A DNA stretch of 63,993 nucleotides, counting the filler, from Neoconidiobolus thromboides FSU 785 (Eukaryota; Fungi; Entomophthoromycota), in the NCBI GenBank assembly GCA_025603075.1. It is 11 parts of 11 records of this genome, joined end to end, with 100 filler letters (N's around TTAATTAATTAA, not from the genome) between each part and the next. Parts side by side here need not be neighbours in the genome. Positions count along the whole stretch, not along the records: positions 58,576 to 61,024 come from MU626855.1; 10 more parts are not named here. The stretch is one strand, 5' to 3'. Made by a program: the position numbers and the translations under genes. The notes under the pieces were generated by a model. The model was not told where the DNA came from. It saw nothing but the letters and a program-made list of their open reading frames with translations, and did no database searches. Shown here one piece after another: positions 10,579 through 61,024 of this stretch (within the stretch, counting starts at the first letter, position 1; each line of letters begins with the position of its first letter).

Positions 10579-11003
10579 TATTTAGTATTTCTAATGCCTA
10601 ATCATCAGATTTTAGGCTTGGTTTAGCAAGACGCTATACTTAAATAAGTAGTCGATTAGGTCATAAGAGAGCTATGAGTGTCGTATTTTCATCTTATTTT
10701 TTTATAAAAATGATGACTATATACGCAGAAAGTTTAAGGAATGTTGCGATAGTTTTTGTACCCTATGTGTGTGCCAAAGTTTAATTTATTAAAATAAGTG
10801 GAAGCTTGATGAAGTAGTTAGACGTAATTTATTATACTTACTTCCCAATGATACTTTATTGAAACAAGATAACCTTTTATGACGGAGTGAGTAGTTTACT
10901 ATCAAAGAATCATTAATTTTATTAGAGTATGAGGCTATGAAAGAGGTTTTAAGAAACTTGAAATGAAAATAAAATGGAAAATATTTTATTAATTCATCAA
11001 AAT

Positions 11004-12440
11004 TTAAGCTTCTTTAAGACTAAAGGCTTTAGCTACCTTATAATTTGTAATATCGTAGTCAAATGGAGTTAAATTTAGTTTGTTGTCAATTTTATAAGCC
11101 CAAGATCCATTATTATTATTTTTGATATTATTACTAAAACTATGTTTAATAAACTGGCCGCATAGCTTAATCGACTTTATACTGCTTGGATGAAATTCAA
11201 TTGACTGAAATGCATGTGGCATATCCTCAAAATGATGTAATATCACTTGTTGACCATTTGACTTGGTTTGGCTGTGACTTTTGATTTTACGTGCAAATAT
11301 CATAATTTCGTCCTCAAACCTTTCTTCGCTGCCTACAGTCTAAATATAATCATTAATAAATAATCGTTAATATAATAAACCAATCTTCATTTACCACCAT
11401 TATTGGGGGGAATCCATCAAAGCTATTCTGATACATTGGACTAACGAGTGGGTATTTCAAATATTTTTCAGTAGTGTAAAAATGACCATTAACACTTAAA
11501 ATCTCTTCTTTTAAAGAAGGAATTGTGTTTTCTAATAATTCATTGATAAATAAATAGCCTTTTCCATATTTGGAGTTGGGCTCTGGTAAATAATCATTAT
11601 TTTTTGTCAAAATACTGGGTTGTGATGAGGTTAAGTCGACCCATGGACTTAATAATAAACCTCCTGCTACCATTTTATATTCTTCAAGTTGACTTAATAA
11701 TATTAAAAATGAACTGGATAATCCTCCTCCTGCACTATCACCAGCAATTACTATTTTACTTGCATCAATGTCCATTCCTAGACATTTGGCAGTGCTCTGG
11801 GATATTAGAAATAGGTAAGCTGCCAAAGTGTCCTCCAAAGCACAGGGGAAAGGGAATTCAGGCGCTAGTCTATAGTTTAAAGCTAAAAAATATTGTTAAT
11901 GGTAAGGATATCAAAATGAAAGCGTAATTTATTACCAGCTACTTGACAGTTTGCTTCTCTACCCAATTGGCAATAGAGCGGGCGCTGAGTATTATTAGAG
12001 CATAATATGTATGCGCCACCATGTAAATAAAATAGTGTTTCTTTGTCAACCCTACAATCCACACTTTTGGGCACTGCGAATTCTAGTTCCAATTTTTCAC
12101 TGTTATACCAAAGAGCATCTTCTCTTTCAATTGGATATTTACCAATTTCTTTGATTAATATTTCTTTAATGATGTTATGACTCAACTCCCTATAGTGATC
12201 CGGGATATAAGTTGTTGTTATATCAAAATCTTCAGGTGGTGCCTTGGAGCCCATCTCCATGTTATCACGAGCCATCTTCAAGGTTTGCCCTGGATAAGGA
12301 TCCAAGCTCTTTTTGATAGCACTCCAGGTTTGGCGGAACTTTAAATCCCAAGAAGGTAGAGGTACCTCTTGAGTTAAATTTACATAGCTTGAATATAGAG
12401 CTGTGTTTAGTAAATTACAAGCAGATTTTTTTTTGTCCAT
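11004..12440 (-). CDS. HSL-family alpha/beta hydrolase (esterase/lipase), paralogue B, complete, 3 exons
   Basis: Introns 11935-11883 and 11394-11340 join HGGAY...QVA|ALNYRLAPEFPFPCALED...GDSAGG...LSPWVDLT...IMV|TVGSEERFEDE...EDMPHAFQ; nucleophile Ser and His motifs present. Confidence 0.93.
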
Positions 12441-13070
12441 GATAAGGAATTATAAGTTAAAGTTGGTTGTTTATTTGATTTTATATACTTTTTTTGTGTT
12501 TAATCTGCAATTGATTATTTTGATTTAGACCATCGTTGATTTGTAATTAATTTTGATTTTTTCGGGAAATATTCTGATGGTACGATTTAAATGTGCCTAC
12601 ACTTTAATTACTAATTAGTTTGATAGAGGCGGGTTACGGCTTAACATTTAAGCCAATATCCATAGGAATTGTATAACTGATTATTATAAATTTCTATAAT
12701 CTATTATTTTTTAAACACTATTTTAAATACTATCAAGATATTTTTTTAATTTTTCTTTTTGTTCATTTTTTATAGCATAAAATTTAAAGAATTATAAATA
12801 TTAAAATAAAAAAGATGTTTCGCACTTGGGGGGTTTATACTGTTTCAAGGTTTTCATTTTCTGAAAAAAAGATGTCTCTATACATTAAACACCCTCTACT
12901 TGGAAAACTATCTTTTATGAAATAACAAATTACTAATAAAACTTTATAGCATAAAATACTATACTGATTATACTCTAACAGAGTTAAAAAATCAAACAAT
13001 GCAGGAAACTTTATAAGTTAGAATATATTGAGCCAAGAAACAAGAAAATAAGTTATTGCTTCATTTAAAA

Positions 13071-13756
13071 TCAAGCTTCCTCTTCTTTAAGACTAAAAGT
13101 TTGTGATATTTGATACTCTGTTATATCATAATCAAGCGGGGTTAAATTTAGTTTGGTATCAATTCTACATGCCCAAAATTGATCATCGTTGTTATTATTA
13201 ATGTTATCACTTAAACAATCAGCAATAAACTTGGAGCCTAATTCAAATGATTTTTGACAGCTTGGATGGGAATCAAAAGTTTGAAATAGATGTATCATCT
13301 CATCATAAACATGTAGTATTACTTGTTGACTATTTGAGGTCCCTTTGTTATTACTCTTTAATTTGTAAGCGAATATCATACATTCATCCTCGAATCTTTC
13401 TTCATCACCTACAATCTAAAAGCAATTGTTAATTAACTAAAAATTTATATACAAAAAATTTAACTTACCACCATTATCGGAGGGAATCCATCAAAGCTAT
13501 TTTGATACATTGGACTAACAAGTGGGTATTTCAAATATTTTTCAGTAGTGTAAAAATGACCATTAACATTTACAATCTCTTCTCTCAAATTGTCGGATAC
13601 ATTTACCAGTAGCTCATTAATAAATAAATATCTTTCACCATCTTTCAAGTTTGGTGCCTCTAAAAAATCATTATTTTTTGTCAAAATACTGGGTTGTGAT
13701 GAGGTTAAGTCGACCCATGGACTTAATAATAAACCTCCTGCTACCATTTTATATTC
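13071..13756 (-). CDS. HSL-family alpha/beta hydrolase, paralogue C, C-terminal part (5' lost in gap)
   Basis: LSPWVDLTSSQPS...IMV|IVGDEERFEDE...DEMIHLFQ; intron 13468-13416 at the same position as in paralogue B. Confidence 0.88.
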
Positions 13757-13856
13757 NNNNNNNNNNNNNNNNNNNNNNNNNNNNNNNNNNNNNNNNNNNN
13801 TTAATTAATTAANNNNNNNNNNNNNNNNNNNNNNNNNNNNNNNNNNNNNNNNNNNN

Positions 13857-14443
13857 GATTCTATGACTTGAACTCTGGTTCATTACATGTAGAAGGAACT
13901 AATATTAAAGAATGGAATTTGCCTTATTTGAGATCTGGTATGGCCATAGTAGGACAAGAGCCAGTCTTATTTGATTTAACTATTAGAGAAAATATAGCTT
14001 ATGGTAGACCTGATGCAAGTGAAGAAGAAATTGTCAATGCTGCTAAGATGGCAAATGCTCATAACTTTATTTTGGAACAACCTGAAGGTTATGATACTAG
14101 AGTTGGTGAACGTGGTGGTAAATTATCTGGTGGCCAAAAACAAAGAATTGCTATTGCTAGAGCTGTACTCTTGAATCCTAAGTTGTTGTTATTAGACGAA
14201 GCTACCTCAGCTTTAGATTCTGATTCTGAAAAAGTAGTCCAAGTTGCATTGGATAAAGCTGCAGAAGGTAGAACAACGATTACTATTGCTCATCGTCTTT
14301 CTACAGTACAAGATTGTGATTGTATTGTAGTAATGAAGTTAGGTAAAATGGTTGAAATGGGCACTCACGAAGAATTGTTAGAACTAAAAGGATATTATTA
14401 TTCTTTAGTTACGCAGCAACAATTGACTAAAGAGGAGGAATAG
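13857..14443 (+). CDS. ABCB (MDR/P-glycoprotein) transporter, C-terminal nucleotide-binding domain; 5' lost in gap
   Basis: Q-loop GQEPVLF, signature LSGGQKQRIAIARA, Walker B LLLDEATSALD, H-loop IAHRLSTV. Confidence 0.93.
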
Positions 14444-15156
14444 AAGCTTGTTTACTGGTTTATAATTTTATTAATAAATAATAACATATTTTTTTAACTT
14501 ATAAATTTCTTTTGTTTTTTGGCTTAATAGTTAAGTATAAATTTATAAACTAATACTATAATAATAACTTGCAACATAATTTTATTTTAGTAATAGATTA
14601 TCAAAAAGATTTACTGAATTAGAATATTGAATAGGGATAACAAGCAATTTGGTTCAAAATTTAGTATTTTTAACTTATCAAGTTTATCAAGTAATTTAAA
14701 CAAATTAGTGTAAAATTTTTCTTCAATAATTCAAAACAAAAACGAACAAATAAGAAAGCTAATCTATAAAGAGGTTTATTATATTTTGACCATAACCATT
14801 TTGATTTACGCTACTAAGTTTACATTTTGTTTACTTTTATCCAAAGTATCATTGCAATATTTTGATGATTTGCTCATATTTCTCTCCTAAGATAAATGTG
14901 GTGTTAAAAATACTGTAAAGTTTCTTGCACTACCAAGAATTCCGAAAAGACTTAAAAAATTATATCGACTTCATTGACCATTGCCTAATAACCTATTAAT
15001 TCCGAAAATCTTTTTGCATATTGATGTTTGTTTGAATAATATAACAAATAATAGGTCCTAGTATAGTATTTTTTCAACAATTCTAGTATAGTTTATTAAT
15101 AATGGCAGAAAAGTCACAAACGCTTAAATAAAATTCCAAGTATTAGGATAAAAGTA

Positions 15157-15255
15157 ATGGGGTGTTTTTTTGGCTTCATTACTTTTTCTATCCTTTAAGC
15201 ACTATTTAAGCGGAAAATTTATTAGTAAATTCTTAAGCACAAAATACATCCCCAA
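15157..15255 (+). mobile_element. 105-bp MITE family copy 5
   Basis: atggggtgttttttt...aagcactatttaagcggaaa...aaaatacatcccca. Confidence 0.82.
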
Positions 15256-15806
15256 TGTTAATAATAATAAAATTTATTTTAATTAGTTGAATAATATTAA
15301 ATGGAAAAACAAGATCAGTTAAAACAAAGTACAGTTAAAAGCATAACTTTTATTATATTGATGCTATTATAGAATATTTCAATATATTTGTTTATAGTTT
15401 CATAATTTACTATATTAAACAAATTTGGTTCGGATGGCATAATGAGAGTAAAAATTGAAATATCATGGTTGCTTTATAGTTAATGAATATAATTAAGTTA
15501 TATAAAAACTATTTGATTGATAGAATTTCTTGAATATTTGGTAAAAATAATCCAGTTAAACTATCCTGACTTTGTGAAATTTGATTATAGCAAATAACCA
15601 CTTTTTCCAATCTTTATGTGATGTAAATATATTACAACAATATAGCTAATAATTTATTTCAAGAACATTTATTTCAACATGTTAGCTAAATTGCTTTATT
15701 TAGAGATTTCAAAGCATTAATTGTCATTGATAATATAACATTAAGTAACTATGTTAAAATGAAAAAGTATTTAAGACAAATTGAGTGTAAAAAAACATTT
15801 ACAAAG

Positions 15807-17240
15807 ATGAATTTTAGATTATTTCAAATTTCAATAATGTTTTTATCCGTAATGGCTGAGCCATATTACGGTGGATTGTTAAAAGTAGATAACGGTGTAT
15901 TAAAGAAGTTCAAAGTTTTTAGGAGTGGAGGTTCAACGGAACGATGGTTTAATCAATCTTTAACCCATGATGGTGGCCCAGATAGCAGAAAGTTTTGGAA
16001 GCAACGTTATTTTGTAAATGATCAATATTATCAACCAGGCGGGCCTGCTTTTCTTTATATAAGTGGCGAAGATGAACTTGATGGTAGCTGGGCACAATAT
16101 TCACTTTTAGCTAAAGCAGCTGAAGAACACAATGGAGTTGTGTATGCTCTAGAACATCGGTTTTATGGACAATCTCAACCTAAACCTGATTTAAGCCTTG
16201 AAAGTTTGAAATACCTTACTTCTGATTTGGCTATCGGTGATTTGGCTACCTTTGTTTTAAATATTACATTGCCACAATCGAATACCAATCGGACTAATAG
16301 CCTTAATACTAAATGGATAATTGGTGGTGGAAGTTATGCAGGAAATATTGCTGCTTGGGCACGCTCTATATATCCAAACATTTTTTATGGAGCAATTGCA
16401 TCCTCCGCACCAGTTGAAGCGAAAGAAAACTTTTATGAATATGATTTACAAGTTCAAAAATCAATTGTTGTAAATGGTGGACAAGACTGCTTGAATTATT
16501 ACATTGAAAACATTAAAGCAATTGATCATGTGCTGTTTAGTGGTGATGAAGTTAAAATTAAGAGTTTAAAGGAAAAATTTAATTGTGCAGATGTTGATAA
16601 TAGATATTTTGTTAGTAGTTTAGGCCAAATTGGTGGTATAGTTCAGGATAGTAATAACACCAATATTAATATTGCCAATCATTGTAAATCATTATATTTA
16701 AAGGGATCGGGTGCCGAAAAATTAGATGATTTTGCTTCAAATTTCAAAAAAAGCCTTGGAAAGAATACATGTAAAAGCTTTACTGACTTTTCGCGTTACA
16801 ATTCTACTCATCAACTTGGCCCCAATGAATCTACGCGTCAATGGTTTTATCAATCTTGTAATGAATTCGGTTACTGGCAAGTTGCACCTCCAAAAAACTT
16901 TCCTTCATTAAAATCTCGGCTTTTTGATGTTGCTTTTAATCGTGAATCAATTTGTAGTGCCGTTTTTGGACCCAAAGGGCCTGCATATCCAAACATTAAT
17001 GAAACCAATAAAAAATACAAAGGTAAAAGCATTAAGTTTGACCGATTGTTGTTTGTTAATGGGGAGCTTGATCCATGGACCCCACTTTCTGTTACTAATT
17101 CAACAGATAAATTACAATCTATAATCATCAAAGGAGCTGCGCATTGTGCTGATATAGCTTATCCAGATTCAAGTGACACACAATATATTGCAGAAGCAAA
17201 GAGAAAAGTTCTTGAATTTATCAGAAACATCTTAAAATAA
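15807..17240 (+). CDS. Secreted serine carboxypeptidase S28 family (PRCP/DPP7-like)
   Basis: FNQSLTH, WKQRYFVN, ALEHRFYGQSQP, GGSYAG nucleophile, ASSAPV, WFYQSCNEFGYWQ, NGELDPW, AAHCAD. Likely start MNFRLFQ at 15807 (ORF opens at 15759); intronless. Confidence 0.93.
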   Translation: MNFRLFQISIMFLSVMAEPYYGGLLKVDNGVLKKFKVFRSGGSTERWFNQSLTHDGGPDSRKFWKQRYFVNDQYYQPGGPAFLYISGEDELDGSWAQYSLLAKAAEEHNGVVYALEHRFYGQSQPKPDLSLESLKYLTSDLAIGDLATFVLNITLPQSNTNRTNSLNTKWIIGGGSYAGNIAAWARSIYPNIFYGAIASSAPVEAKENFYEYDLQVQKSIVVNGGQDCLNYYIENIKAIDHVLFSGDEVKIKSLKEKFNCADVDNRYFVSSLGQIGGIVQDSNNTNINIANHCKSLYLKGSGAEKLDDFASNFKKSLGKNTCKSFTDFSRYNSTHQLGPNESTRQWFYQSCNEFGYWQVAPPKNFPSLKSRLFDVAFNRESICSAVFGPKGPAYPNINETNKKYKGKSIKFDRLLFVNGELDPWTPLSVTNSTDKLQSIIIKGAAHCADIAYPDSSDTQYIAEAKRKVLEFIRNILK

Positions 17241-18093
17241 ATGGAATAAAAGCAATAGCTACAGATATTTAATGTCTATAGTTAAACTTTATTAAGCAGC
17301 TAAACTAGTATTATTCGAAATAACATTTAAATGCTTCAGTTATGATTATAAAGTTCTCAGGGACCTTAGCAGTACTTTCAACATTTTTGAACCCATATTA
17401 TTATCTTATGTAATCAAAAATAAAAATAAAGTTCTAATATTCAAATACGGAAATAATCATATCATTAGTTTAAAGGTCCCTCTTAAGAATTATTACTGTA
17501 TTAAAAAATTGGATTATCTAAGTTTTTTAAAAAAATGGGCTGCTGCTGTGTAACTCTATTGTTTAGTTAACTTCTCTTAAAAATGTGTTATTTGTAAGGT
17601 ATAGCAATAATTTTAAAAGCTTGGTAACCTAGAAAAAGAAGCTCGGATATTCCAGATAGTTATGATTGCTGATTTACTTATTTTAGTTTTAAAAATTACA
17701 AAAATAAATCCAATCATAGAAAACATATAACTCGCTAATACTAGCAATGTATAGTTAGGTAGTCTAGTGAATACCCTGTACTTTGTTCTCGAACTGTTAC
17801 TACATTATTTGCTCCTCTCTTTTTTAATACTCTCTTTTTAAATTCCAAATAACGATTAATCATAGTCTAAATACTAGCAATATAAATACAGAAAAGAGCG
17901 CTGGGTCAAAGTTGGTTGTAACCCTCCATATAACTCCATCTCCTTTTATCAAAGACTATATCCGTCAGTTGTTTTTACTTTATCAGATTCTGCTAATTGT
18001 GTGCTTAAGATTGTTGAAATTAAAGATGATATACTATAAATCAACGCTATCATATGTGGTTTGATCTTAAATTATATTTTGTAGATAATAAAA

Positions 18094-18196
18094 ATATGAG
18101 GATGTATTTTTGTGTTTAAGAATCCTACTAACAAATTTTCCGCTTAAATAGCGCTTAAAAAGTAGAAAAAATAGAAGTCAAAAAACACTCTCATAT
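18094..18196 (-). mobile_element. 105-bp MITE family copy 6
   Basis: atatgaggatgtatttt...ttccgcttaaatagcgcttaaaa...aacactctcatat. Confidence 0.85.
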
Positions 18197-18382
18197 AGTA
18201 GAAATGTTTGAGGTGTAAAGTATCGTAATTCATTGATGGAGCTTATATTCAGCTGATGTCAAAGAAATAAAAATAAATATAATTTAAGATATTGAATCTG
18301 ATAAACCGCTTATTGAAATAATAGTAATAATTATTATCAAAAAAGCGTATAAAGTATATAAATTTATTAACTTCAAAACAAA

Positions 18383-18486
18383 ATATGGGGATGTTTTTTT
18401 GACTTCATTACTTTTTTCATTTTTTAAGTGCTATTTAAGCGGGAAATTTGTTAGTAAAACTCTTACACAAAAATACATCCCCATAC
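18383..18486 (+). mobile_element. 105-bp MITE family copy 7
   Basis: atatggggatgttttttt...aaaaatacatccccatac; near-perfect TIRs. Confidence 0.88.
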
Positions 18487-18526
18487 TTTTTAAATTTGAA
18501 TTATTAGATAAATTTTCTTTAATAAA

Positions 18527-18626
18527 ATATGAGGGTATTTTATTTTATCATTTTCCAACTTTTAGGTGCTATTTGAGCGGAAAATTTGTTAGTAAAATTC
18601 TTAAACACGAAAATACATCCCCATAT
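18527..18626 (+). mobile_element. 105-bp MITE family copy 8
   Basis: atatgagggtatttt...gctatttgagcggaaaatttgttagtaaaattc...aatacatccccatat. Confidence 0.82.
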
Positions 18627-20838
18627 GTAGTTTAAAAATTATAGTACTTGAATTCTGAAAATCATAATATTAACCTGTAATTGTTGTATTTTTCAATCCA
18701 GTATTCTAATGAATTATCTATAAAATCTAATAGTATTATAATTCACTTATATTTTATTTTCAATTTTCAAATCAATTTAACATAAAAATAAAATTTATTA
18801 AAATTTATTAAAATTTATAGGTCCACCATATTTAAAATGTTTCATTTAATTTTATCAGGAAGCTATCTCAACCTTTTAAATAATAAAATAATAATCTTTA
18901 CATAATGTTTTCATAATAAAAAAAGGCAATATAAAATACATACAATCTACTTTAGCAAAATGATGTGGTACTATAAAAAATAAGATACGGTTATGAGGCT
19001 AAATTTCGAGATGCTTTTTAGAATAATTTTAAATAAATTCGTATTATGTAATATGTTATTGGAGTTATAAGATAGAAATGAGGCAGATGTATAAATATAA
19101 AATATGGAAAAAGTATCATATGGATTTATCATGAATTAAAGTTTAAAAAACTGATGTATATAAAAGCTGTTTTAAGCTTAAGATCGCTCAAAAATGAACC
19201 TATTAAGTAAATTTATTAATATTTTAGTTACTTTTTTCCTTTTAAATTCCAGATAGCGGTATATTCCTTTTTAACATAATATTAAAGATTTGACCATTTT
19301 AGCATAACGTTACAATGTATCAAGTATTCTATCTAATACGCAATAATTAAGGTTATTAATTTACTATCGCTTATTTCTAATACCATTCGTAAAAAGAATT
19401 TAAATACTTAACTTATTATCAAAATAGGGTGGATTATAGATTATGATAGGAAATAAATGATAAAAAAATAATAAAAATTAAAATAGTAAATTTAAATAAA
19501 CTTTAAAGTATTTGAGGTCATTGATTATAGCATAAATTCTAGATTATAAACCATACAAGAACCACAATACCGAACTTATATTAAGAATTATATTTTGGAA
19601 TCAATAGAGTCTGCATTTTTATTTATAGAAAACCGTCCTATCTATATCTTTATTTTGTTCATTTTATTCTGGGACTTTATGAAATTATGATGCTTTTATT
19701 TATTAATAGCAATAGTTTATACTAATAAGAATGGTTCTTTTATTGCTCTTATAGTTAATTATATATATATATTATAATTAATGACTTTATTTTATTAAGT
19801 AAGAAGATTCTAAGTTGATTGATTACATTTAGGGGTTATCCTTTACTGGTTAGAAGCTTTTACTTTAAAAAAATGAGCCAAGTAAAAAAGATGATTAAAG
19901 TTAAAATAAAGCGAAAATTAAATAAATTTGCAATGGTTTTAATAATAACTTATATTTGTTATTTAAAAATATAACTTTTTTAAAATTATATTAATAGCAT
20001 CAAGTTTTTTTACCTTCATTAATCAATAAAATGACAGAGTTTTATGTTAAGGTAGGAATAGTAGTACAAAGATGGCTGTGAGCGAACATCTTTAGGTTAC
20101 ATTAAAGTAAAGTTAAATTATTAAGCGCTTCGATAAAATCTAACAAATCCATTAATTTGGTCCTCGTGGCTATGTATAAGATAACCCCCCTTTTCTCCCT
20201 TTACATTACTATTCATAACAATTATTCAACTCTTTTTTGATGTTCTGTTTTATAATAAATTTTGGAACTATAATCTTTTACGGGTTTGTGGATATTTAGA
20301 GAAAAATTAAAACCATAGTAAGAATAAAGATAAGGTAGTATTACTAAGTAAATAACATTAACAATTATTATCAAGGTTTGAGATAAACCTTTTGTATGCA
20401 GTTAACATTTATATAACATTACAATAACAAGGAAGAATAAGATGTTTTAAAATAATAATAATAATAATAAAAAGGAGAATTAAAATCAAAAATAGGAATG
20501 GAAAAGGGGTTGAGGGAAATTGTTTAAATATTACAAAATTTATTTAAATAAAATTAAAAAATGTGATTAAGATACATAAACAGGTTAGGTGGATATAAGA
20601 AGAATGATGGGATATTACAATATAAACTTTAAGAAAAAATGAATAGTAAAACTTAAATAATTGAAATTGAAACTATTATTATAATATTTTCAATTAATTT
20701 TGTTTTTCATAATGAATTATTATAAATAATAATAAAAGATATGATCATACTAAAAAATATAAAATGCTACAGAAGATAAAAAATCTGATATTTCTCAGAA
20801 ACTTACAACGTCAAATCATAATATCAAAAAGCAATAAC

Positions 20839-58575: not shown

Positions 58576-58617
<42 letters not shown>

Positions 58618-61024
58618 CATACTCAAAACAAAAAATATATAAGAATTGAAATGAATATATTGGCATCAACATTATTTGCTGTAAGTTTTGTGAATTTTGA
58701 ATCAATGAAAGGAACAAAGGGTGCTAATGGTGCTTTACATTCTAGTTTAACTCATCTTTATAGATTTTTAAAAAGTATCTTTGCAACAGATGACACATTA
58801 AAATCATTAAGTTCATTAGCTCAAAGAATACCACAATTTAAAGCGTCTAAAGAAATAACATCAGTACCAACAGCAACAGAAGAAGAAGAAGATTCGGTTA
58901 TTAAAAAAGAAATAGTTAATAAGATTGATATTAATATAATTAAAGAATTATGGTCTACATTTGCACATGAGAAATTAGAATTTATATCTAATGGTTTATT
59001 TGATGATTATTCAAGTATATTATTTATCAAAAAGAAAAATAATAATTTAAAAGAGAATAATGATAATAATAACAATATAGATCCATTTGATTTTAAAGTA
59101 GAATTAAAACAGTTAAGACAATTATTTTTAGAAAACCTGAATTATTCAGTTATTTCTGATACAACTTATATTAAATATTTAACAGCTCATAAAACAGGTC
59201 AACATTCATTTCCTAGTTTTTGCATATTAAGATTAGTATCAATTACAAATACATTAATATGGTCACGATTAGTATTTGTTAATGTTAAATATCCAATTAG
59301 AGAGAAATTAATTCAACAACATTTGTCAATTAAATTTGAATTCAAATTAAATCAACAATCTTATTTAATACAAAACTGTCAACGACCCTTACATAATTTG
59401 TTAGTTCAAAATGAATTCCCAAAAAAGGAAAGTTATTTAAATCGACAATCTTTATTACCTTCATTTGCTATTGGATATTTGAAATATTTTACAAAAGAAT
59501 GGTTAATCGAATTAAATTTAGATAATTATTTTATAAATAATAATTTACCTTCAATTTATGATTTAGTTTATTTTATTTTATTAAAAGCCAAATTATCTCA
59601 AGGTTTCATTAAAATTGGTGAGTATGAAGATGAATCTGTTTTATTTTATAAAGAATTTAATTCTCCTTGGAAACAAAGTTATCGTCAATTTGGTATTCAA
59701 TATAAAATCAATAAGGATTTTAAAAACAATCAAGTAACAAGTGAAATTTGGAGTGAACCTATTAACAATGAACAATTAGAAGATGTTAGTTTAAATGCCT
59801 CAATGGAAATTTTAGCTAAAGATGAATGTATTATTACTAATTTAATATCGTTTGATTTAATTCATCAAGCTTGTAGAAATAAGAAGAATTTACTAAATGA
59901 TAAATTAAGATTAAGGTCCCTCGTTTTAAATAGTGTAGCATTAATTTCAACTTATAAAATACCCAAATTTGAATATAATTTACAAGTATTAATAGAATTA
60001 GAAAAAGATATCTCATTTTTAAAAGACAAATCTTATTTTATACCAAATTTAAATGAAAATAGTATTTATCCATTAAAATTTAATTTAACTGAAGAAGAAT
60101 TAATGAATTTAAACTCATTAACAATCCAATGTTTATTTTTTCAATTTTTTATTGAAACTTCAATAATGAAATTAACAGATACTGCAGTAGCTGGTGAAAT
60201 CAAAGATCCTTGTAATATACCAGTTAACCAATTAAAAGGGTTAGATATTATATCACCTGAAATGGCCTCCCAAAAATGGGGATTTGCTAAATTAATTAGT
60301 TCTACTTCATTTGCATTAACTTTTGTACCCAATATTATTGATGTTTTATTAAGCTTTCAAAAATATATTCAAAATAATGGAAGTAATAATGAAAGTTTAA
60401 AATTAAAGTTATGGTCATTTGAATGTATTCGAGAAAATAATACAAATTCTAATCAATTTAGTTTAAATTTATCTAAATTAAATGAAATTCAATTTACTAA
60501 AGAGAAATGTTATAATAATTTATATCCAATTATACCAACAAATGAAAAATTAGTTTCAATTATGACTGAATTAGAGAGAGTAGAATTCTGGACAAAATGG
60601 AGTCAACCTCAACCTAATATTTGTTTACAAGTTCATAAACTACAAAGTTTATTTGATAATCTTATTGGGAGATGTTTTGTTCAATCTATTTATTCCTCAA
60701 TGTTGTTGAATTATAAAATGGACATTATGGATGTTAATATGGCATTAAAATTATGTTTTAAAGTTGAAATTGAAATTGACATAACAAATTATTTAAATTT
60801 AAAAACAGAGAAAGATAAAAGAAATTTTAATCAATTAAAAAAACAACAAAATGAATTACAATTTCAACAAAAATTTGAAAAATTAATTTATAATCATTTT
60901 AATTTATTTAATCAACAAAATAATTCAAATAATGAACAATTAATCTATTATTTAAAATCATTAAATAATGTGAAAGAGAATGAAAATAATTCAAATAATA
61001 ATAATTCAAATAATAATAATTCAA
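58576..61024 (+). CDS. SZT2: SZT2-like (KICSTOR scaffold) protein, internal fragment open at both gaps
   Basis: Collinear blocks resemble human SZT2 as recalled: LKSIFATDDTLKSL, PSFCILRL, RPLHNLLV, KLSQGF, VTSEIWSEP, DECIITNLISFDLI, KLISSTSFALTFVP, RCFVQSIYSSM...EIDITNYL. The upstream (AAT)14 is in frame (poly-Asn). Confidence 0.8.

Follow-up and report, generated by a model that had tools for sequence, protein, structure and literature searches.

The contig MU626855.1 (2,449 bp) of NCBI assembly GCA_025603075.1 very probably carries an internal, intron-free part of a single-copy-type gene orthologous to SZT2, which is evolutionarily constrained, has an SZT2-like predicted fold and would encode a segment of a KICSTOR-like scaffold. 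In the window (the whole 63,993-nucleotide stretch of DNA that was analyzed and to which all coordinates of this locus refer), the contig occupies positions 58576 to 61024 and is called here the piece. Its identification as SZT2, already proposed in a preliminary description of this DNA, held up on a chain of matches through a full-length Entomophthora protein, on a profile built from a wider set of fungal sequences, and on a comparison of the predicted fold with experimental structures.

An open reading frame under purifying selection

The 2,449 bases of the piece have a G+C content of 21% (A 43%, T 36%). The frame that starts at 58576 contains no stop in 816 codons, as the preliminary description had stated, versus 50 to 137 stops in each of the five others; with a stop probability of about 0.10 per codon at the composition of the piece, such a frame would remain open by chance with a probability of about 5e-38. 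Asparagine makes up 13% of the encoded protein. Open frames on the opposite strand, otherwise unremarkable, are all 65 aa or shorter.

The public gene call starts the protein at an internal ATG, yielding a 791-aa model. Immediately upstream of the shared MNILA sequence, the window encodes KKYIRIE, compared with RKYIRIE in Entomophthora and RKYLRIE in Massospora. Because the homology with these relatives extends upstream of the ATG at 58651, this codon is not the true start, and both ends of the frame are accordingly truncated. The features of the piece, including three blocks that are conserved across fungi, are listed in Table 1; the second block is the best conserved part and corresponds to an alpha/beta core.

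Table 1. Features of the piece in window coordinates
Feature	Position	Strand	Remarks
Internal fragment of the probable SZT2 orthologue, open reading frame of 816 codons	58576..61023	+	Open past both edges of the piece; corresponds to Entomophthora P0003 490-1211 and human SZT2 ~461-1345
(AAT)15 run coding for poly-Asn	58576..58621	+	Left edge; assemblies end there
ATG taken as start in the public gene call (791-aa model)	58651..58653	+	False start
Conserved block 1	58651..58830	+	MNILA...TDDTLKSL, residues 1-60 in the 791-aa model; matched at corresponding positions in fungi ranging from chytrids to Mucoromycota
Conserved block 2	59203..59910	+	Residues ~185-420; contains KLSQGF and VTSEIWSEP; human SZT2 ~650-970; pLDDT 80-92
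KLSQGF motif	59590-59607	+	
VTSEIWSEP motif	59734-59760	+	
Conserved block 3	60283..60960	+	Residues ~545-770; contains RCFVQSIYSSM and EIDITNYL; helical end on human SZT2 1289-1343
RCFVQSIYSSM motif	60670-60702	+	
EIDITNYL motif	60772-60795	+	
15-nt repeat, 2.7 copies, coding for an Asn/Ser-rich run	60985..61024	+	Right edge; assemblies end there

The piece was found in 13 public runs from 10 studies (the DNA or RNA type of these runs is the guess of the search tool). Substitutions among the 40 listed variants (36 further variants are unlisted) were 32 synonymous and 8 non-synonymous, with a pN/pS of about 0.06, and the three indels detected in run contigs (+12, +3, and +3) are each a multiple of three and keep the frame. 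These data show that the piece is coding and under purifying selection. No credible splice-like joint was seen in the run contigs over the piece, which is intron-free. One joint that skips 482 positions was considered as an intron; it occurs in a single DNA contig with 21 letters on the shorter side and was judged to be a low-complexity artefact. In DNA run X7, two sets of contigs cover window positions 58998 to 61020, one matching the window and the other several percent diverged (for example, 0 versus 17 differences in 199 nt), suggesting that the sample contains two haplotypes or two nuclei, or a mixture of two strains.

The poly-Asn runs that the preliminary description had reported at both edges were located, as AAT triplets on the left and as an Asn/Ser-coding repeat on the right. 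Contigs from four independent runs cover the piece, and in two of these, a single contig (~2,425 nt) runs from position 58635 to 61014 and ends at the same AAT runs as the piece. Contig ends beyond the AAT runs conflict between runs, and neither gap closes. It is because of these Asn-coding runs at both edges that the putative SZT2 gene is split in short-read assemblies. The runs themselves are lineage-specific, low-complexity inserts located in loops.

Homologues in early-diverging fungi

A word-based protein search with the piece retrieved a single relative, from Massospora cicadina: a hypothetical protein of 1,336 aa (E 1e-165, 38% identity) whose residues 552-1271 match the piece. Exhaustive HMMER search yielded 36 matches, most of them 2,800-4,000 aa long; on the long ones, the piece maps to residues ~350-1,600 in three collinear blocks (query residues 1-60, 185-420, and 545-770). 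The best match, Entomophthora muscae DSO57_1005373 (2,874 aa; denoted P0003), aligns with the piece end to end with 45% identity (E 1.6e-166). Source names were checked for 20 of the 36 matches, and all 20 come from early-diverging fungi, namely Entomophthora muscae, Basidiobolus, Glomeromycota, Mortierella, Mucorales, chytrids, and Paraphysoderma; no animal protein was present among the 36. Three matched clusters, from Mortierella, Borealophlyctis, and Geranomyces, were deposited under the name “KICSTOR complex protein szt2.”

A quick maximum-likelihood tree was built for the region of the piece, with long branches flagged and with a window sequence that deviates in composition. In this tree, the piece is the sister group of Massospora and Entomophthora (SH-aLRT 100), whereas chytrids, Mortierella, Glomeromycota, and Mucorales each group separately, with the phyla placed as expected. 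The tree and the closest relatives support the fungal origin assumed in the preliminary description, and the placement points to an AT-rich entomophthoralean (Zoopagomycota sensu lato) of the insect-pathogen type, outside Entomophthoraceae, as the source. The branch of the entomophthoralean clade is long (2.14 changes per column), so that functional divergence is possible.

Two observations concern the gene models of the relatives. In Massospora, the genes L0F63_002966 (1,336 aa) and L0F63_002965 (1,515 aa) are located 29 bp apart on the same strand of JAKSZP010011999.1, and residues 7-2871 of DSO57_1005373 are collinear over positions 10983-19554 (L001) of this sequence, through the model boundary near 14766. 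By this sequence comparison, the two models are one SZT2 gene split by annotation. In Entomophthora muscae, DSO57_1005373 has a near-identical SZT2 homologue, DSO57_1005369 (P0037; 2,890 aa), four locus tags apart on the same 723,745-bp contig; the pair may stem from a recent local gene duplication or from sequence that was duplicated in the assembly. A word-based search for further pieces of the gene in the organism studied here, with the adjoining downstream part of the Entomophthora protein as the query, matched only the second Massospora model.

Sequence connection to human SZT2

Among PDB sequences, the Entomophthora protein P0003 matched SZT2 chains only, the best being the human chain 9v0j_D (3,432 aa) with an E-value of 1e-48. 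The matching stretches connect P0003 residues 62-341 with human residues 90-367, residues 1508-1840 with 1914-2251, and residues 2501-2644 with a chain that represents a C-terminal fragment. The piece corresponds to P0003 residues 490-1211, that is, it lies between the first two stretches matching the human protein.

For this intervening region, we used a profile (A1) derived from an alignment of 27 sequences, which is limited to the part of the proteins that the piece covers and has the piece itself as its first row. HMMER aligned A1 with human SZT2 (9v0j_D) with an E-value of 4.6e-31 in three collinear stretches: A1 positions 35-376 on human residues 492-873, 379-439 on 900-970, and 748-802 on 1289-1343. 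Residues that do not vary among the A1 sequences are D47, E335, E369, P370, P438, P560, C592, C702, T712, and F742, numbered on the 791-aa model. The four motif pairs that the preliminary description had given as examples of the similarity were recovered: the fungal motifs are present in the window, and the human counterparts RLSEGF, VTEVWVEP, RCYVRGLFRSL, and EIDITPFL follow in the same order in this alignment. Its assignment of the piece to the N-terminal third of SZT2 is roughly right with respect to extent, given that the piece covers approximately residues 461-1345 of the 3,432 human residues (to about 1599 by structure), but the segment is not the N-terminus.

When the piece alone was compared with PDB sequences using phmmer, there was no match at E <= 1, and a profile of four entomophthoralean sequences did not reach human SZT2 in the PDB; the profile check proposed in the preliminary description was significant with the 27-sequence profile. 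The link to human SZT2 therefore runs through the wider fungal profile, the P0003 chain, and the predicted structure. Entomophthoralean SZT2 is undetectable from human SZT2 unless intermediate sequences are used, and a word-based search from chytrid SZT2 retrieved chytrids only and no animal SZT2. Taken through these intermediate fungal sequences, the homology of the piece to SZT2 is strongly indicated.

Scans of the piece against Pfam and NCBIfam identified no family, and neither did the Pfam scan of the Massospora protein. The 2025 copy of Pfam-A has no model that picks up this part of SZT2, either in the piece or in the Massospora protein, and therefore such fragments remain “hypothetical” in automated annotation.

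Predicted fold

AlphaFold2 modeling of the piece on the A1 alignment produced a model with a pLDDT of 70 and a pTM of 0.68. All seven significant Foldseek matches of this model were chains of human KICSTOR cryo-EM structures; the top match was 9o5a_D from the KICSTOR-GATOR1 complex (E 1.5e-15, probability 1.0, 779 columns), followed by 9o5d_E (E 9.7e-11) and 9o5e_E. VIA-align superimposed model residues 1-427 on human residues 461-1001 (Z = 11.2; 340 aligned, rmsd 4.8), residues 1-607 on 461-1257 (Z = 10.5), and residues 46-782 on 503-1599 (Z = 10.0; 522 aligned). The predicted fold of the piece is thus that of the matching SZT2 segment in the cryo-EM structures of KICSTOR-GATOR1; since the model was built on A1, this result is independent of the profile match only in part. 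The search for look-alikes in the ESM Atlas gave no usable match; the model generated by the Atlas itself was poor (pTM 0.17), and the structural neighbors of that model carry no meaning.

The best-modeled alpha/beta domain (window positions 59377-59862; model residues ~243-404) resembles small alpha+beta platform folds, in particular the AP2 appendage platform, KA1, TBP-like, and Bet v 1-like domains (VIA Z-scores of 8 to 9.4, with ~100 aligned residues). It also shows weak similarity (Z = 7.7, 114 aligned) to chain X of 9h4q, a structure of the yeast SEAC wing with EGOC. These are probably generic folds, with no function implied.

Proposed role and alternative explanations

In mammals, KICSTOR is organized around SZT2 as its central scaffold; SZT2 binds GATOR1 and is needed for the presence of GATOR1 at the lysosome, where GATOR1 renders RagA/B inactive, so that a shortage of amino acids leads to inhibition of TORC1 (PMC11836306, PMC12999518). 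By analogy with the animal protein, the full-length product of the gene studied here (~2,900 aa in the closest relatives) could be the large scaffold of a KICSTOR-like complex. Such a complex would hold GATOR1/SEACIT (DEPDC5/Iml1, NPRL2/Npr2, and NPRL3/Npr3) at the vacuolar or lysosomal surface, where GATOR1 would turn off RagA-type GTPases, so that TORC1 would be inhibited under amino acid scarcity. Our search of the literature found no experimental test of any fungal SZT2.

A different fate of the gene has to be weighed against this proposal, namely that the piece comes from a true SZT2 descendant that functions without KPTN, ITFG2, and KICS2, or in a changed role, with no animal-like KICSTOR in this organism. 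The long branch of the entomophthoralean clade and the failure of the subfamily profile to reach human SZT2 are compatible with such a change, as are the incomplete KICSTOR sets of several early-diverging phyla (PMC11836306), and this genome is represented by the piece alone. Nevertheless, KICSTOR homologues are reported to be conserved in Entomophthoromycota (PMC11836306), Entomophthora muscae having copies of KPTN and Basidiobolus copies of KICS2 according to the supplement of that study, and the strong purifying selection, together with the retention of the same blocks as in other fungal homologues, fits a retained role. We consider this alternative improbable. A related and likewise unlikely scenario is that entomophthoralean SZT2 has a remodeled N-terminal module and belongs to a reduced or rewired KICSTOR, for example, with SZT2 alone docking SEACIT at the vacuole.

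Two further explanations fare far worse. The contig is short and isolated, and SZT2 is best known from animals, so one might suspect that an animal or some other non-fungal source contaminated the sequenced sample, but the provenance of the matches speaks against it: fungal names for all of the relatives whose source was checked, with Entomophthora and Massospora the nearest, no animal protein in the complete set of matches, and a tree that follows the fungal phyla. Furthermore, the same stretch recurs across the independent studies with strain-level variation, and animal coding sequence does not typically combine AAT runs with so low a G+C content. Because the tree makes the piece the sister of Entomophthora and Massospora, it is not a contaminant; this placement, the exclusively fungal named matches, and the many independent runs exclude an animal source, and contamination in general appears exceedingly improbable. 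Equally negligible is the chance that the piece is a decaying pseudogene fragment or a fortuitous open frame in AT-rich DNA, an idea invited by the low-complexity repeats that flank the fragment and by the absence of a matching Pfam or NCBIfam model. For the piece itself, this was rejected on the open frame and its vanishing chance probability, on the low pN/pS with indels that keep the frame, and on the conservation with Entomophthora over the full length of the piece. The preferred explanation is accordingly a constrained segment of an SZT2 orthologue, with the KICSTOR-like role as proposed above.

Implications

The occurrence of SZT2 and KICSTOR in Entomophthoromycota is already published (PMC11836306, 2025), and to the distribution of KICSTOR outside Dikarya described there, the piece adds one unannotated, fragmentary SZT2 orthologue. 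The preliminary description had inferred that this lineage retains an animal-like, amino acid-sensing arm of TORC1 control; this agrees with the published survey, which names Entomophthoromycota and has the retention of such a TORC1-inhibitory arm as its main conclusion, so that the inference itself is not new. Whether fungal KICSTOR tethers GATOR1/SEACIT and restrains TORC1 is no more testable with this fragment than with the published full-length fungal genes. The practical value lies in annotation: the public gene model of 791 aa is incomplete and begins at a false start codon. If the reduced or rewired KICSTOR were to prove true, these fungi would offer a natural minimal system for the role of SZT2 without its animal partners.

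Comparison with known SZT2 proteins and KICSTOR systems

Wolfson et al. (2017), as cited in the later work, considered KICSTOR not to be conserved in fungi, a view revised by PMC11836306 (Sci Rep, February 2025). According to the latter study, the genome set of which included Conidiobolus coronatus, Entomophthora muscae, and Basidiobolus meristosporus, KICSTOR homologues including SZT2 are conserved in Mucoromycota, Entomophthoromycota, and Neocallimastigomycota, occur here and there in other early-diverging fungal lineages, with incomplete sets in several early-diverging phyla, and are absent from Dikarya such as yeasts, which concurs with the absence from budding and fission yeast stated in the preliminary description. 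Its supplement records duplicates of KPTN in Entomophthora muscae and of KICS2 in Basidiobolus. The main conclusion was that a TORC1-inhibitory arm like that of animals persists in early-diverging fungi.

Compared with human SZT2 (PDB 9v0j, 9o5a, 9o5d, and 9o5e; IPR033228), the blocks of the piece are collinear with residues 492-873, 900-970, and 1289-1343, and the closest full-length relative, P0003, is also very large, with collinear N-terminal, middle, and C-terminal matches. The differences are the low identity in structural alignments (~15-18%), the Asn-rich inserts of the piece, which are lineage-specific and unlike human SZT2, and the length, 3,432 aa in human versus 2,874 aa in the full-length fungal relative. 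The fungal SZT2 homologues (PMC11836306; Mortierella, Borealophlyctis, and Geranomyces) belong to the same family as the piece by direct HMMER matches and share the same three blocks at equivalent positions, with vertical inheritance along the fungal phyla. Unlike these, the piece is an unnamed 791-aa fragment model of extreme AT content in a long-branched entomophthoralean subgroup. Its nearest relatives, Entomophthora muscae DSO57_1005373 (45% identity) and Massospora cicadina L0F63_002966 plus L0F63_002965 (40%), cover the whole piece without large gaps; in contrast to the piece, their coding sequences are far less AT-rich and lack the Asn runs, and, being labeled “hypothetical,” with the Massospora gene divided between two models, they stand to gain from the same annotation.
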